Origin: Monocercomonoides exilis PA203
Taxonomy: Eukaryota; Protista; Preaxostyla
Assembly (NCBI GenBank): GCA_001643675.2
Contig: LSRY02000054.1
Coordinates: forward strand, 537,525-601,524
Direction of reading: 5' to 3'
DNA length: 64,000 nt
A model generated the notes under the pieces. The model made no database searches. It saw only the letters and a list, made by a program, of their open reading frames with translations, and was not told the DNA's origin. The position numbers were made by a program, and so were the translations under genes. Below, one piece after another: positions 51,301 through 55,162 of this stretch. Numbering within the stretch: position 1 is the first letter of the stretch; each line of letters starts with the position of its first letter.

Positions 51301-51318
51301 CTAGGTTAGGGTTAGGGT
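51301..51318 (+). repeat. Interstitial telomere seed 2 (CTAGGTTAGGGTTAGGGT)
   Basis: The last array unit breaks off after ...TTTCATAAA, where other units continue TTCGTTCC, and is followed by telomeric repeats. Confidence 0.85.
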
Positions 51319-51529
51319 GTTCGGTGGTGTTACAAACGTAATTAATGAATAAAACACATTTCTGGATAATCTACGATAATTATAAATAATCAATAATTTC
51401 ATTCAACTTATTTTCTATTCTATTTTTTTCAAAAATTTCGTTATTTTTTAATATTCATTGTTAAAATTTGATCCAACCCATGACAAAATTTTTGAATTTT
51501 GAAATAGAAAACAAGTCGATTTTGTTGTT

Positions 51530-54500
51530 ATGGAGCAAATACAAATGAACAATCAAGTGATGGATCTGGAGCATGAGTTTGAAATGCTCACTGGAATAAC
51601 CAGTGAACATTCAACAGAATTTTTCAAGTCAAATTCAGAAAAAGAGTTAAAGTTAACTGTTTGTGAATTAATTTGTTATTTATTCGCATCGATTCAAACA
51701 TGCATTCAATATTATTTATTTATTGAACAAAATTATAGAGAGACGAAACAACAACTGTGCAGACAGAAACAAAAAATTCACTTGAAAATTCAATTGATGA
51801 AGAAGATTATGAGTTGGAAAAAAGAAAAGAAATATGCTCCAAAGTTGTTGAGTTGATGAATGAATTAATGACACCAAATAAAAAATCTTCATGTCAAAAT
51901 GTGAAAAATCATTTTTGCAGGTGTTCTTTAAACAATACGGAATCACTGAACAGTTCATTACAAATTCAAACACCAACAAAAAAGAACAAATGTTTACAAA
52001 AAACAAGTTTTGAAAATGCTAACAATGTAACTTCAACTCCCTCTTCATCCCGTTTTTATAAAACAACACTCACAAACGAAGATTTATTATGCAATGTTGA
52101 AAAAAATGATAGAAATGAGGAAAATGAAAAAGAAATTGAAAAACCTTCAAATGTCGAAAATGACAATGATGAATGCAGCTCAGATGATGAAGATGACGAA
52201 GATTTAGAAGAGGATGATATATCATCTTTGAACATAACATCTGTTCAAAGATTGGGAAAAGATAAAATGGAATTATTCTTTCAGAACCTTGAAAAAGCAG
52301 ATTCAAATGAAGAAGAGAGTGTTTTCTCTTATCAATCAAACGAATCAGATTCATCATTAAGAAAAATATTCTACTCAAATCACTCCACACAAACAGAAAT
52401 CCCTTTTTCTTTTACTTCCTCTCAAACTCTCTCATTCGGTTCTTCTACTCAGTCAAGCGGATCCGCATTCACTGACTTCATTTCGGAACAAAATCCATAC
52501 CTTCGCCCCACAAGGATGGACTTGGCTGCAAAAAGAGTTGGAAAGGAAAAAGCTCTCCAGTACATGAAGCCAAGTCCATTGTGGTCTGACGCTACTATTC
52601 GAAAGCATGCATGGGTGCAAAGATTGCTGCAAACGTGGAGCAAGCTTGTTGAGTGCCCAATATGGCCTCTTCATCCATTAGTCGCAAAGGGATTCATTCT
52701 TTTCTGCGGTAAAGAATGTTTCTACTCATTGACAAGCATTGTGCACGTTATCACCCCTTCTATAAAAAGAATAAATATAGAAAAAATGGGAAAAAAGATT
52801 AATAGCAAGACAAACGCAGCAATAAATGAAGCAATAAGAAATTTAAGAAACGACAAAGAAGTGAACAAAAAGGGAAAAGAAAGGGAACCTGCGCTGATTT
52901 CGGACGTTGCTCGAATAGTCCATAATCTCCCTGATGAGCTAGAAAGCAAATATTTGGAAGCATCTCTGTATCTAATTGGAGTTCAAACTGGTGCAAGAGC
53001 CATTACATTATCTAGCCTAAAAATGAGTGACATAAAAAGAGTAATACAGTCTAAGGAAACAAACAAACTTCTTGTTACACTTTGTTACAACAGGACAAAA
53101 GGTTCCTCGCATTGGAACCATCACGTCACAATCGAAGGAGAGGAGGAGAGTCGTAGCGACGATGATGCTGTGTACTGGTTTTCTTTGCACCTGAAAAAAA
53201 GCGTTGGTGTCAGATTGAGTGAGTGGATGACAAAGAAAGAAGAAGTTGATGGAGAAAGGCCTGTTTGGCCAATCTCCACAGATGTGATGAGAGAAAGATT
53301 CAAGCAGAGGGCCGAGAATGCTGGATATCCCCGGAATCTCTTCAGTTTCCACTCTTTACGAAGCGGATTCATATGCTCCGCCCTCATAAAGAGTGGAAAA
53401 AATGAAGATTCAAAGAAGGCAGTGCTTGAGAAGACTGCGCTGATTGCTGGTTGGGTCCCATACAGGTTGGCCCAAATGACATATATAAAGAACGTGGCAA
53501 GAAGGGCAATTGTTTCATCACGTTTGGTGATGCCATACAAAGAGGGAAGAAATGAAAGTGAAATGGATGAAACGTTGTTGGAGTTAGAAATGTTTCATGG
53601 AATAGTTTTGAAGATGAAGGAAGGGAATGAGAAGAATCCGTACGAGAAATATAAAGAGAAAGTTGAAGAAAGAATGAAGATATTTTTTGAAGAAGAAGAA
53701 GTCAAGAAAGCAAAGAAAGCCAGATACATAAGAAGCGGGTCCGTTGGAATGTGCGCAGAGAATATGGAATTAAATGATTTCATAAAACAAAAAATGGCAA
53801 TGACTGAATATAAGGGGAAAAAAAAGCAAACCCCAACTCTTCGAACAAACTGCGCTGTTTTTTGTTGGAGAAATTACATCAAGCAACAACTGTTTATGCA
53901 CATTGCAGACCCCTATATAACAGCTGAAGAATTTTGCAATCATGCAGAAATAAACACATCAACTAATATCGTGAGAAAATATGAGAAAAAGAAATTGAAA
54001 GATAACAAAGAAAAGGAAAAAAGCAACATGAATGAAGAGAATGACAAAGATAATGAGAAGGAATTATCAGACAAAAATGAAATCGATCAGAAGAAATTAA
54101 CGTTTGACAAAAGAAAAAGAAATGAGAAAAACAATGTTTGCAGAATTAAATGGACAAAGGAAGATGATGAAAAAGTTAAAAGAATGTATGAGGTTGAAAA
54201 AAAAACAATAACAGAAATAAACAAAGAGTTCATATTCAGGTCATGGCACAATATCCACGATCACATCAAACATATGATAAAGAAAGGAAAATTGAAAAAG
54301 AGACAACCGCAAACATTAAAAGAAATACTGCATATAGACGAAAATATTGCAACAAACCTTTATTCTTCATCCACTTCTTATGCCTCAGACACAACACCAT
54401 CACCATCATCATCGGCCTCAGCTTCAGCCTCAGACACAACTCCATCATCATCATCATCGACTTCAGCTTCAGCCTCAGACACAACTCCATCATCATCATC

Positions 54501-54729
54501 ATCGACTTCAGCTTCAGCCTCAGACACAACTCCATCATCATCATCAGCTTCAGCTTCTGCCCCTTCATTGTTGTCAACCTATGTGAATGAAATAAAAGCG
54601 TTGAAAAGAAAGAGAGTCAATAAAAGAAAAAGAAAAGAAGATGATGAATATGTCGATTATTATGCAGAAAATATTTGCATAATATTAAAAGGAAATGGAA
54701 AGAGAATTACAAGAAGTATGGACAGTTAG
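51530..54729 (+). CDS. Tyrosine recombinase (Crypton/DIRS-type YR fold) with a C-terminal Myb/SANT-like domain; probable intron 51659..51738
   Basis: The catalytic set is in order: R in QTGAR (52996), K in RTKG, HSLR (53350), W in AGW, Y in QMTYIK (53482). A helical core-binding-like region lies upstream (WSDATIRKH...PLVAKGFI). The Myb-like segment is KWTKEDDEKVKRMY...ITEINKEFIFRSWHNIHDHIKHM (~54148-54285). ATG 51530 plus a GTTTGT...TATAG intron joins in phase 0, giving ~1039 aa. Confidence 0.88.
54382..54560 (+). repeat. 45-bp coding minisatellite (ASDTTPSSSSSTSAS, ~4 copies) in the recombinase tail
   Basis: GCCTCAGACACAAC(T/A)CCATCA... recurs every 45 bp. Confidence 0.9.
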
Positions 54730-54930
54730 ATAGACAGAAGAAAATAAAAATCATACGTATTTAATGTTTTTCATATCACGTTTATATCAATACACATAAT
54801 GATAATTAAAATAAAAAACATAAAATTAGTTATTATGAAAATAAAAGGAAAAAATACAAACCCAAGTGAACAAAAGAGGTTTTACAAAAATGTGTGCCCA
54901 CCTGCCCACCCTCCATCCCTCCTGCCATAA

Positions 54931-55162
54931 TTCCCACCTTCCCGGCTACTTGCAACAGCTTTGACCTATTCCCCTTTGCACCTCGTTGTTTCACTGCAGC
55001 AAGTTAGCCTTCCCACCCACCTTCCCGGCTACTTGCAACAGCTTTGACCTATTCCCCTTTGCACCTCGTTGTTTCACTGCAGCAAGTCAGCCTTCCCACC
55101 CACCTTCCCGGCTGCTTGCAACAGCTTTGACCTATTCCCCTTTGCACCTCGTTGTTTCACTG
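54931..55162. repeat. 83-bp GC-richer tandem repeat, ~2.8 copies, downstream of the recombinase
   Basis: CCCGGCT(A/G)CTTGCAACAGCTTTGACCTATTCCCCTTTGCACCTCGTTGTTTCACTG occurs at 54941, 55024 and 55107. Confidence 0.95.

Follow-up and report, generated by a model that had tools for sequence, protein, structure and literature searches.

How does an intact gene for a tyrosine recombinase come to lie directly behind a short telomere tract that is buried inside a chromosome end? The question arises in the oxymonad Monocercomonoides exilis, where contig C52 closes with a 64-kb stretch, referred to here in its whole length as the window, whose end coincides with the end of the contig (601524). An open reading frame (ORF) in its distal part had originally been predicted to encode a recombinase joined to a Myb-like domain and suggested to represent a DNA element, or a domesticated enzyme, that integrates at TTAGGG tracts. 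The gene, its homologs and their flanks were followed through the Oxford Nanopore (ONT) assembly of M. exilis (82,301,135 bp, 101 contigs), the comparison being based on 30 or more short loci and on coordinate-only searches in a genome with about 90 chromosome ends. Judged from sequence, the family is one of genetic elements specific to chromosome ends, present in oxymonads and in some uncultured eukaryotes. The family itself, its location and orientation, the seed of telomere repeats at its boundary, its distal truncations, the purifying selection on its protein and its conservation across species are established by the observations described below.

The recombinase-Myb gene

The reading frame extends without interruption over 990 codons from position 51757 to 54729 of the plus strand and points toward the telomere, in agreement with the frame of roughly 1000 residues first reported. 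Its description as the only long intact ORF of the last 23 kb holds if a single low-complexity antisense ORF is set aside; no others of at least 200 amino acids were found there. In the public gene model the protein comprises 820 amino acids encoded by a single exon and starts at Met171. A putative ATG exon (51530-51658, +) followed by a putative intron (51659-51738, +) is located within the leader; other subfamilies contain nothing that corresponds to the proposed exon 1. The distance from the buried telomere seed to the proposed ATG at 51530 is 212 bp, as against the approximately 210 bp originally given, and the distance to the long frame is 440 bp.

The complete R-K-HxxR-W-Y catalytic set read from the window was recovered as invariant across nine paralogs of 25-45% identity. 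The invariant residues (9-11 paralogs aligned) are R414, K448, H532, R535, W566 and Y576, encoded on the plus strand by codons at 52996, 53098, 53350, 53359, 53452 and 53482, respectively, with a spacing that we take to be Cre-like. An AlphaFold2 (AF2) model was calculated for residues 249-640 (52501-53676), which comprise the core-binding and the catalytic domains; its predicted local distance difference test (pLDDT) score is 66, and its C-terminal third is of low confidence. In a Foldseek search with this model, all of the 50 top matches in the PDB were tyrosine recombinases, with Cre as the best (E 6e-6) and lambda Int, IntI, XerH/D and Flp among the others, and the alignments spanned both domains. 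The structural part of the check proposed for the recombinase thus gave a uniform answer, whereas the cut-off of Pfam PF00589 (Phage_integrase) was not reached: the window protein had no match and one paralog scored 21.4 bits (cut-off 27.1). By residues and model together, the window ORF is predicted to encode a tyrosine recombinase with the two-domain fold.

Pfam scans of the ORF and of neighboring ORFs revealed no reverse transcriptase, RNase H or gag domain, as had been noted from the window, and no methyltransferase. A retroelement of the DIRS/Ngaro/VIPER type was rejected because no adjacent ORF for reverse transcriptase or RNase H is present between 51318 and 60949, and the gene is accordingly not part of an ordinary DIRS element. 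A Pfam match of the window protein to 'Herpes_capsid' was dismissed as noise caused by the low-complexity Ser/Thr repeat.

The C-terminal domain (54142-54285, +; residues ~796-843) had been described as a single Myb/SANT-like repeat. Support at the level of the family was obtained from the family profile, which matches c-Myb R3 with an E value of 1e-11, from Pfam Myb_DNA-binding, which is matched by two paralogs, one of them above the cut-off (L030, 31.6 bits vs 24.4), and from an AF2 model in which the domain forms a three-helix bundle (pLDDT 81). The Myb segment of the window copy alone is too diverged to reach significance with Pfam or phmmer. With the 74-residue model Foldseek gave no significant match, the domain being too small to discriminate. 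Against TRF1/TRF2 the same profile yields E values of 0.1-0.5. Helix 3 of the window copy reads HNIHDHIKHM, and in distant members (CKDKMVN, CKDRERN, CSDRWRN) its resemblance to the telobox (LKDKWRN-like) is partial only. The original caveat that a clear telobox is lacking was therefore justified. By profile and alignment, neither the helix-3 telobox nor the closeness to TRF1/TRF2 that define the TRF/Taz1-type telobox Myb class was found; the domain is Myb-like at the family level and not clearly TRF-type. What survives of the proposed DNA element that uses its Myb domain to integrate at TTAGGG is the combination of recombinase and Myb domain, the absence of a reverse transcriptase and the link to telomeres; a reading of TTAGGG by the domain, which is nearer to c-Myb R3 than to TRF1/TRF2, is not supported as proposed.

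Chromosome-end location, seed boundary and distal truncation

A six-frame search of the genome yielded at least 49 matches to the family. For 25 of these the distance to a contig start is no more than 52 kb, as against 3.1 expected (P 2e-17), and nearly all lie within about 50 kb of chromosome ends. Most right-end copies are 0-30 kb away from the telomere (C52, C1, C60, C41, C33, C24, C26, C8, C56, C45, C31 and C34), and the one clear internal copy, on C30, is decayed. The predicted enrichment of homologs at chromosome ends is thereby confirmed, and a random distribution without telomeric repeats at the boundaries is not what the family as a whole displays. In the close family the reading direction is toward the chromosome end in 21 of 22 copies (P 5e-6). 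The opposite direction, toward the centromere, is taken by L030 and its relatives, a distant lineage (~30% identity) that groups in the tree, with moderate support, with a metagenome copy of like reversed polarity in a stack. Comparisons of subfamily copies with unsaturated dS gave a ratio of nonsynonymous to synonymous substitution rates (dN/dS) of 0.12-0.17, indicative of a protein under constraint by purifying selection. With its confinement to ends, fixed polarity, repeat boundary and independent junctions, the family has, as far as sequence can define function, the properties of a telomere-specific mobile element.

The proximal boundary of the unit in the window is the seed (TTAGGG)2, TTAGGGTTAGGG, at 51306-51317 (+), besides which the window contains no other interstitial exact match (chance 0.16). 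Of 21 copies with a complete 5' end, 14 have a seed of 2-4 repeats on the G strand 420-660 bp upstream of the match, so that the predicted start of the 5' flanks, (TTAGGG)n-GGGTGTT, was recovered in its seed part in these copies and not clearly in the remaining seven. In seven sets of copies homology begins at an identical 5' nucleotide and the upstream flanks are unrelated. The seed is found at that point in six of them (C52/C1/C27, C72/C41, C37/C80, C64/C5, C38/C33 and the Blattamonas loci L038/L039); the C38/C53 set has the identical starting nucleotide and no seed. The subfamily of the window comprises the copies on C52, C1 and C27, which are 99.9-100% identical and each follow 2-3 repeats behind differing flanks; all three genomic copies of its 5' end are located at chromosome ends. 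A variant seed, TTAAAGGG, accompanies its 5' end at three chromosome ends, and the element therefore carries at least part of the seed. Past the seed, at a distance of 7-17 nt, an inverted AACCC is present in 9 of 24 unique junctions, compared with a background of 1.8%; this motif could be a site for the recombinase or the Myb domain and possibly the site of recombination.

The distal side presents a different picture in that no common 3' terminus was found among the M. exilis copies compared. ORFs are cut directly by the terminal telomere in L007, L009 and L022 and by the next seed in L019; L037 and L038 are likewise cut by telomeres or seeds. On C27 268 bp of the element are retained before the telomere, and on C41 a 19-bp stump of another subfamily's 5' end is left. 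The most informative pair is C52 and C1, which are collinear and near-identical from the seed to 60949, with a homology of 9.6 kb. Beyond this point C1 continues into an array of a ~352-bp satellite and reaches its telomere 11.6 kb further on; C52 has CAAACTAGG and the telomere. C52 is, on this comparison, a truncated, telomerase-healed derivative of the C1 end. Since the collinearity extends from the seed to 60949 and C1 goes on, the shared unit is the whole end distal to the seed. Position 55162, originally taken as the right boundary, was rejected as the end of the element because the near-identity with C1 persists to 60949. The unit is not a compact 3.9-kb element ending at 55162, and there is no sign of a two-ended, circle-type Crypton insertion; C52, C1 and C27, the best-resolved case, share the block from seed to end. 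The 5.8 kb distal to the ORF were also considered as conserved cargo, an interpretation rejected because they contain no domain and are common to C1 only.

The truncation points are marked by a signature that had been regarded as part of the element. A 24-mer, TTCAAACTAGG, has 119 matches (with no more than one mismatch) in telomere arrays of most chromosome ends, all in telomere orientation, and the variant was noted at 60950-60958 and within 60959-64000 of the window and in L007, L010 and L022, its 3' part being situated at points of de novo addition. The related motif AAACTAGG, or part of it, is also found at the base of terminal telomeres and of seeds. L006 is cut and bears AAACTAGG at a point where L008 continues, as C1 continues past the motif of C52; AAACTAGG was therefore rejected as the 3' end or att site of the element. 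Its assignment to the element because of its position ahead of the seed was equally abandoned, the signature being present inside telomere arrays and at the bases of terminal telomeres. The motif is best read as a telomerase product that marks de novo telomere addition, and an extended template in the telomerase RNA, CCCUAACCUAGUUUGAA, is the probable source of the TTCAAACTAGG variant. One TTCAAACTAGG-type match, at C13:635065-635082 (+), is internal and in the wrong orientation; it represents a candidate for the telomerase RNA gene.

The link to telomere repeats is a property of the entire family and is conserved across species. A profile search returned 634 homologs, the named sources of which are M. 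exilis and Blattamonas nauphoetae, the remainder being metagenomes. The two Blattamonas copies lie on contigs that terminate in (TTAGGG)n, at 2 and 10 kb from the end, toward which both are oriented. They are 99.2% identical from the exact start of the seed, and their upstream flanks differ. A 4-repeat seed cuts one copy, and between this seed and the telomere lies a 671-bp unit; in the other a stack of units between tracts of 7-12 repeats follows. The full Blattamonas copy measures ~4.1 kb between two repeat tracts. The 671-bp unit is non-coding, begins with CAACCTACTCCTAAACCTAAACCC, an inverted telomere-like motif, and occurs at L039:14432-23052 and L038:12591-13256, where six units are stacked between tracts of 4-12 repeats adjoining the recombinase element. 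A same-strand upstream seed is present in four of seven metagenome contigs (L031, L034, L035 and L037). In L034 telomere repeats begin ~170 bp past the stop codon, which leaves ~3.9 kb from the upstream seed to the terminal repeats, and L037 is a stack of two truncated copies and one reversed copy. Two homologs are unusual in other respects. P0082, from a metagenome contig in ENA, has 2064 amino acids and carries a UCH ubiquitin-hydrolase domain fused to the recombinase, which recalls the peptidase-carrying Cryptons of oomycetes. P0008 (NCBI MGH6876831.1) is a family member on a 2.3-kb contig within a metagenome-assembled genome of 'Rhizomicrobium sp.'; the contig is probably eukaryotic and was mis-binned into a bacterial genome.

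The layers of the window, given from 42468 onward on the plus strand, can be followed from the proximal side. Large ORFs proximal to the subtelomere (3386-8434, 18526-22596 and 32132-40024) encode a fragment of a kinase domain, a beta-helix-like protein and a repetitive protein of 2630 aa, and resemble members of the expanded families that the genome paper mentions for M. exilis. From 42468 to 51300 self-BLAST and the junctions delimit a subtelomeric array in which a composite unit of 1042 bp is repeated in tandem ~8.5 times. The unit consists of two modules. Each opens with a degenerate telomere seed, behind which comes an inverted AACC(C) motif; in one module the opening is TTAGGGTTAAAGGG+TGTTGAAA, as it is at the 5' end in the L018 recombinase subfamily. 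The 1042-bp copies form older layers under the element, in an end made of successive layers, and may represent either non-autonomous partners to the recombinase elements or 5' stumps that were amplified. This satellite is capped by the telomere-addition signature AAACTAGG (51298-51305), which lies outside the element, and is followed by the seed and by the subfamily-specific 5' end and leader (51318-51756), which begins with TGTTCGGTGG. Within the ORF, a 45-bp tandem repeat at 54382-54561 encodes the Ser/Thr/Ala-rich tail. The 3' region (54730-55836) is partly conserved in other subfamilies (BLAST against L010, L026 and L004) and contains 2.8 copies of an 83-bp repeat (54933-55162), identified, like the 45-bp repeat, with Tandem Repeats Finder. 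In the distal part of the block (55837-60754), which has ~99.9-100% identity with C1, no protein domain was recognized. It includes a GC-richer stretch (56131-57047) with 76% identity to the internal locus C25:405884-406814 and no Pfam domain; the 151-aa Lys/Arg/Glu-rich coiled-coil-like ORF of this stretch (56157-56612) may be a gene fragment captured within the terminal block. At 60755-60949 there is the truncated first unit of the ~352-bp satellite, which is GC-rich, contains a perfect hairpin (stem CCTTTTGGATAAAAAACGCGAAA, loop GCA) and goes on as an array in C1. The satellite forms arrays of 10-30 kb with fixed polarity at several chromosome ends (C43:1234-20724, C85:2821-33193, C59:3417-21335, C31:1064483-1071006 and C1 from ~2697840); in the window only the truncated unit is present. 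The healing signature CAAACTAGG (60950-60958) forms the base of the terminal telomere, which Tandem Repeats Finder places at 60959-64000. This telomere of ~3 kb, mixed (TTAGGG)/(TTAGG) with the G strand on the plus strand up to the contig end, identifies a true chromosome end.

Proposed transfer of terminal blocks

The sequences display a pattern in which attachment is seed-first and is followed by distal erosion, healing and renewed addition. In the model proposed here, each unit consists of its own short telomere-repeat seed, a subfamily-specific 5' end and the gene for a Cre-like recombinase with one Myb-like domain. The unit would join seed-first to a chromosome end bearing a nascent or very short telomere, and everything distal to the seed would come along as one block. 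The new end would then be eroded from its distal side and re-capped by telomerase before the next unit is added, and repeated cycles would generate layered subtelomeres of 5' stumps. The encoded recombinase would catalyze one site-specific crossover, in which its own seed recombines with telomeric repeats at another end and the Myb domain assists in locating the repeat. A single crossover of this kind would explain why an intact, constrained gene lies behind the seed, why its orientation is lineage-specific and why the arrangement is found in several species; in many diverged lineages the distance from the seed to the recombinase gene is 340-660 bp. To the proposal that the recombinase drives the seed-first transfer of terminal blocks we assign a probability of about 0.5. 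A tentative extension is that the Cre-like recombinase-Myb protein swaps whole chromosome ends at short seeds in cooperation with telomerase and could serve to rescue critically short telomeres.

Several observations weigh against the recombinase as the maker of the joints, a role that we infer from sequence. Three recent, near-identical copies have seeds of only 2-3 repeats, which agrees with capture by nascent ends that are uncapped and not with insertion into mature 3-kb telomeres. Seed-bounded blocks without a recombinase, such as the 1042-bp unit and the 671-bp unit of Blattamonas, multiply too, and the C52/C1 block runs from the seed into the terminal satellite without a defined 3' end. 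In one third of the 5'-complete copies (7 of 21) a clear seed is missing, and L015 and L016 have a common precise boundary without one. The spacing of the inverted AACCC motif is variable, unlike that of classical core sites, and the motif is missing from the window copy. By profile the Myb domain is not TRF-like. Finally, several copies contain apparent stops, which reflect either real decay or ONT indel errors; the C1 copy, 99.9% identical at the DNA level and yet interrupted in its frame, exemplifies the possible indel error.

Break-induced replication by the host would produce some of these features. According to this scenario, a broken or eroded end gains 2-3 telomerase repeats, its 3' overhang anneals to an interstitial seed and the sequence is copied to the end; the blocks would be spread by the host, and the recombinase-Myb gene would be a selfish passenger beside the seeds or have a resolving or regulating role. 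A block shared by C52 and C1 that has no 3' end is exactly what such replication predicts. Seeds of 2-3 repeats, often directly past a healing signature, occur at three independent near-identical junctions, as would follow from annealing of nascent ends, and both the junctions without seeds and the multiplication of recombinase-less units agree with a host process. Break-induced replication accounts for the short seeds, the missing 3' end and the recombinase-less spread at least as well as the recombinase does. It leaves unexplained, however, why a recombinase constrained at a dN/dS of ~0.15 is kept behind the seed with a fixed orientation in each lineage and in several species, and why the inverted AACCC motif is enriched. 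As an explanation of the whole it is considered rather unlikely, with a substantial chance nonetheless.

Purifying selection, conservation in two oxymonad genera, the many intact copies at chromosome ends and their treatment as ordinary genes in the public annotation would also suit a domesticated host family that is retained for telomere biology, either for the rescue of short telomeres by end exchange or for subtelomere organization. Arguing against domestication is the occurrence of dozens of diverged copies among truncated and stop-bearing ones, stumps and 99.9% identical recent duplicates, with variable presence from end to end, which amounts to a transposon-like demography. Moreover, domesticated Crypton genes are usually without catalytic residues (PMC3212892), whereas these are kept here, and domestication is regarded as improbable. 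Equally little credence is given to a compact two-ended Crypton of ~4 kb that is excised as a circle and integrates site-specifically anywhere in TTAGGG tracts. The ~3.9-kb copy of L034 between the upstream seed and terminal repeats and the full Blattamonas copy between its two tracts have the expected size, and Cryptons use direct repeats of 5-6 bp (PMC3212892) at their termini. Such an element should have a common 3' terminus, which is lacking among the M. exilis copies; the C52/C1 homology extends over 9.6 kb to the end, the proximal tracts are always short and not random in length, and erosion and healing account for the distal ends.

Relation to known systems

If the recombinase does drive the transfer of terminal blocks, a DNA-only recombinase system working with telomerase would rebuild and diversify chromosome ends in oxymonads and other uncultured eukaryotes. 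A small DNA-type recombinase-Myb element confined to chromosome ends would add a new route of subtelomere building, and the enzyme would be tractable for testing recombinase-driven exchange of chromosome ends. Much of the chromosome-end sequence of M. exilis that is listed as 'unclassified repeat' or 'hypothetical protein' is accounted for by the family. No published description of a recombinase-Myb family was found in the literature searched, and the M. exilis genome paper makes no mention of a recombinase. To our knowledge, all well-studied telomere-specific elements are retroelements, and we know of telomere-repeat-specific tyrosine recombinases described only from giant endogenous viruses of crustaceans.

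Cryptons, the tyrosine-recombinase-only DNA transposons of Goodwin (2003) and of Kojima & Jurka (2011, PMC3212892), resemble the M. exilis elements in having one long ORF with a tyrosine recombinase and a C-terminal DNA-binding domain, no reverse transcriptase and a short direct repeat as the presumed crossover site. Unlike in Cryptons, the DNA-binding domain is Myb-like, with no match to the Crypton-derived Pfam DUF3504 or to GCR1_C in the scans, the location is strictly at chromosome ends with fixed polarity and no defined 3' terminus, and mobility seems to involve the entire end beyond the seed as one unit. Instead of the two termini with a 5-6-bp direct repeat by which Cryptons are defined, a precise 5' seed boundary and no common 3' terminus were found. 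The enzyme thus looks Crypton-like, and the family behaves, on sequence evidence, like a telomere-specific element outside the two-ended Crypton definition. The protein has the two-domain fold of Cre and Flp and, like them, a Trp in the catalytic set where the second 'His' would stand; it differs from them by an identity of only ~15%, by long acidic and Ser-rich N- and C-terminal extensions and by the Myb domain.

The telomere retroelements HeT-A/TART, TRAS/SART and the Athena/Terminon Penelope-like elements are RNA-mediated and attach by their 3' end, and their ORFs therefore read toward the centromere. The M. exilis elements share with them head-to-tail stacks at ends, short telomere tracts between units and variable distal truncation; they lack a reverse transcriptase, and in the close family the direction of reading is toward the telomere. 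The Y' elements of yeast are terminal multi-copy blocks next to the telomere with short internal telomere tracts between them and one long ORF, and are amplified by recombination. Their ORF encodes a helicase and they spread by homologous recombination, whereas the otherwise similar terminal blocks of M. exilis encode a site-specific recombinase that is, by its residues, catalytically intact. Endogenous nimaviruses of crustaceans possess tyrosine recombinases specific for telomere repeats (PMC10871703); the resemblance lies in a tyrosine recombinase that is associated with specific integration at the telomere repeat of the host. The nimaviruses are 200-360-kb viral genomes in (TAACC)n, with recombinases that contain C2H2 and SAM-like domains (PMC10871703), whereas the M. 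exilis family has no viral genes, carries a Myb domain, resides in a protist and is stacked at true chromosome ends. The nearest precedents are the telomere-repeat-specific recombinases of nimaviruses and, by analogy, the Y' elements of yeast.

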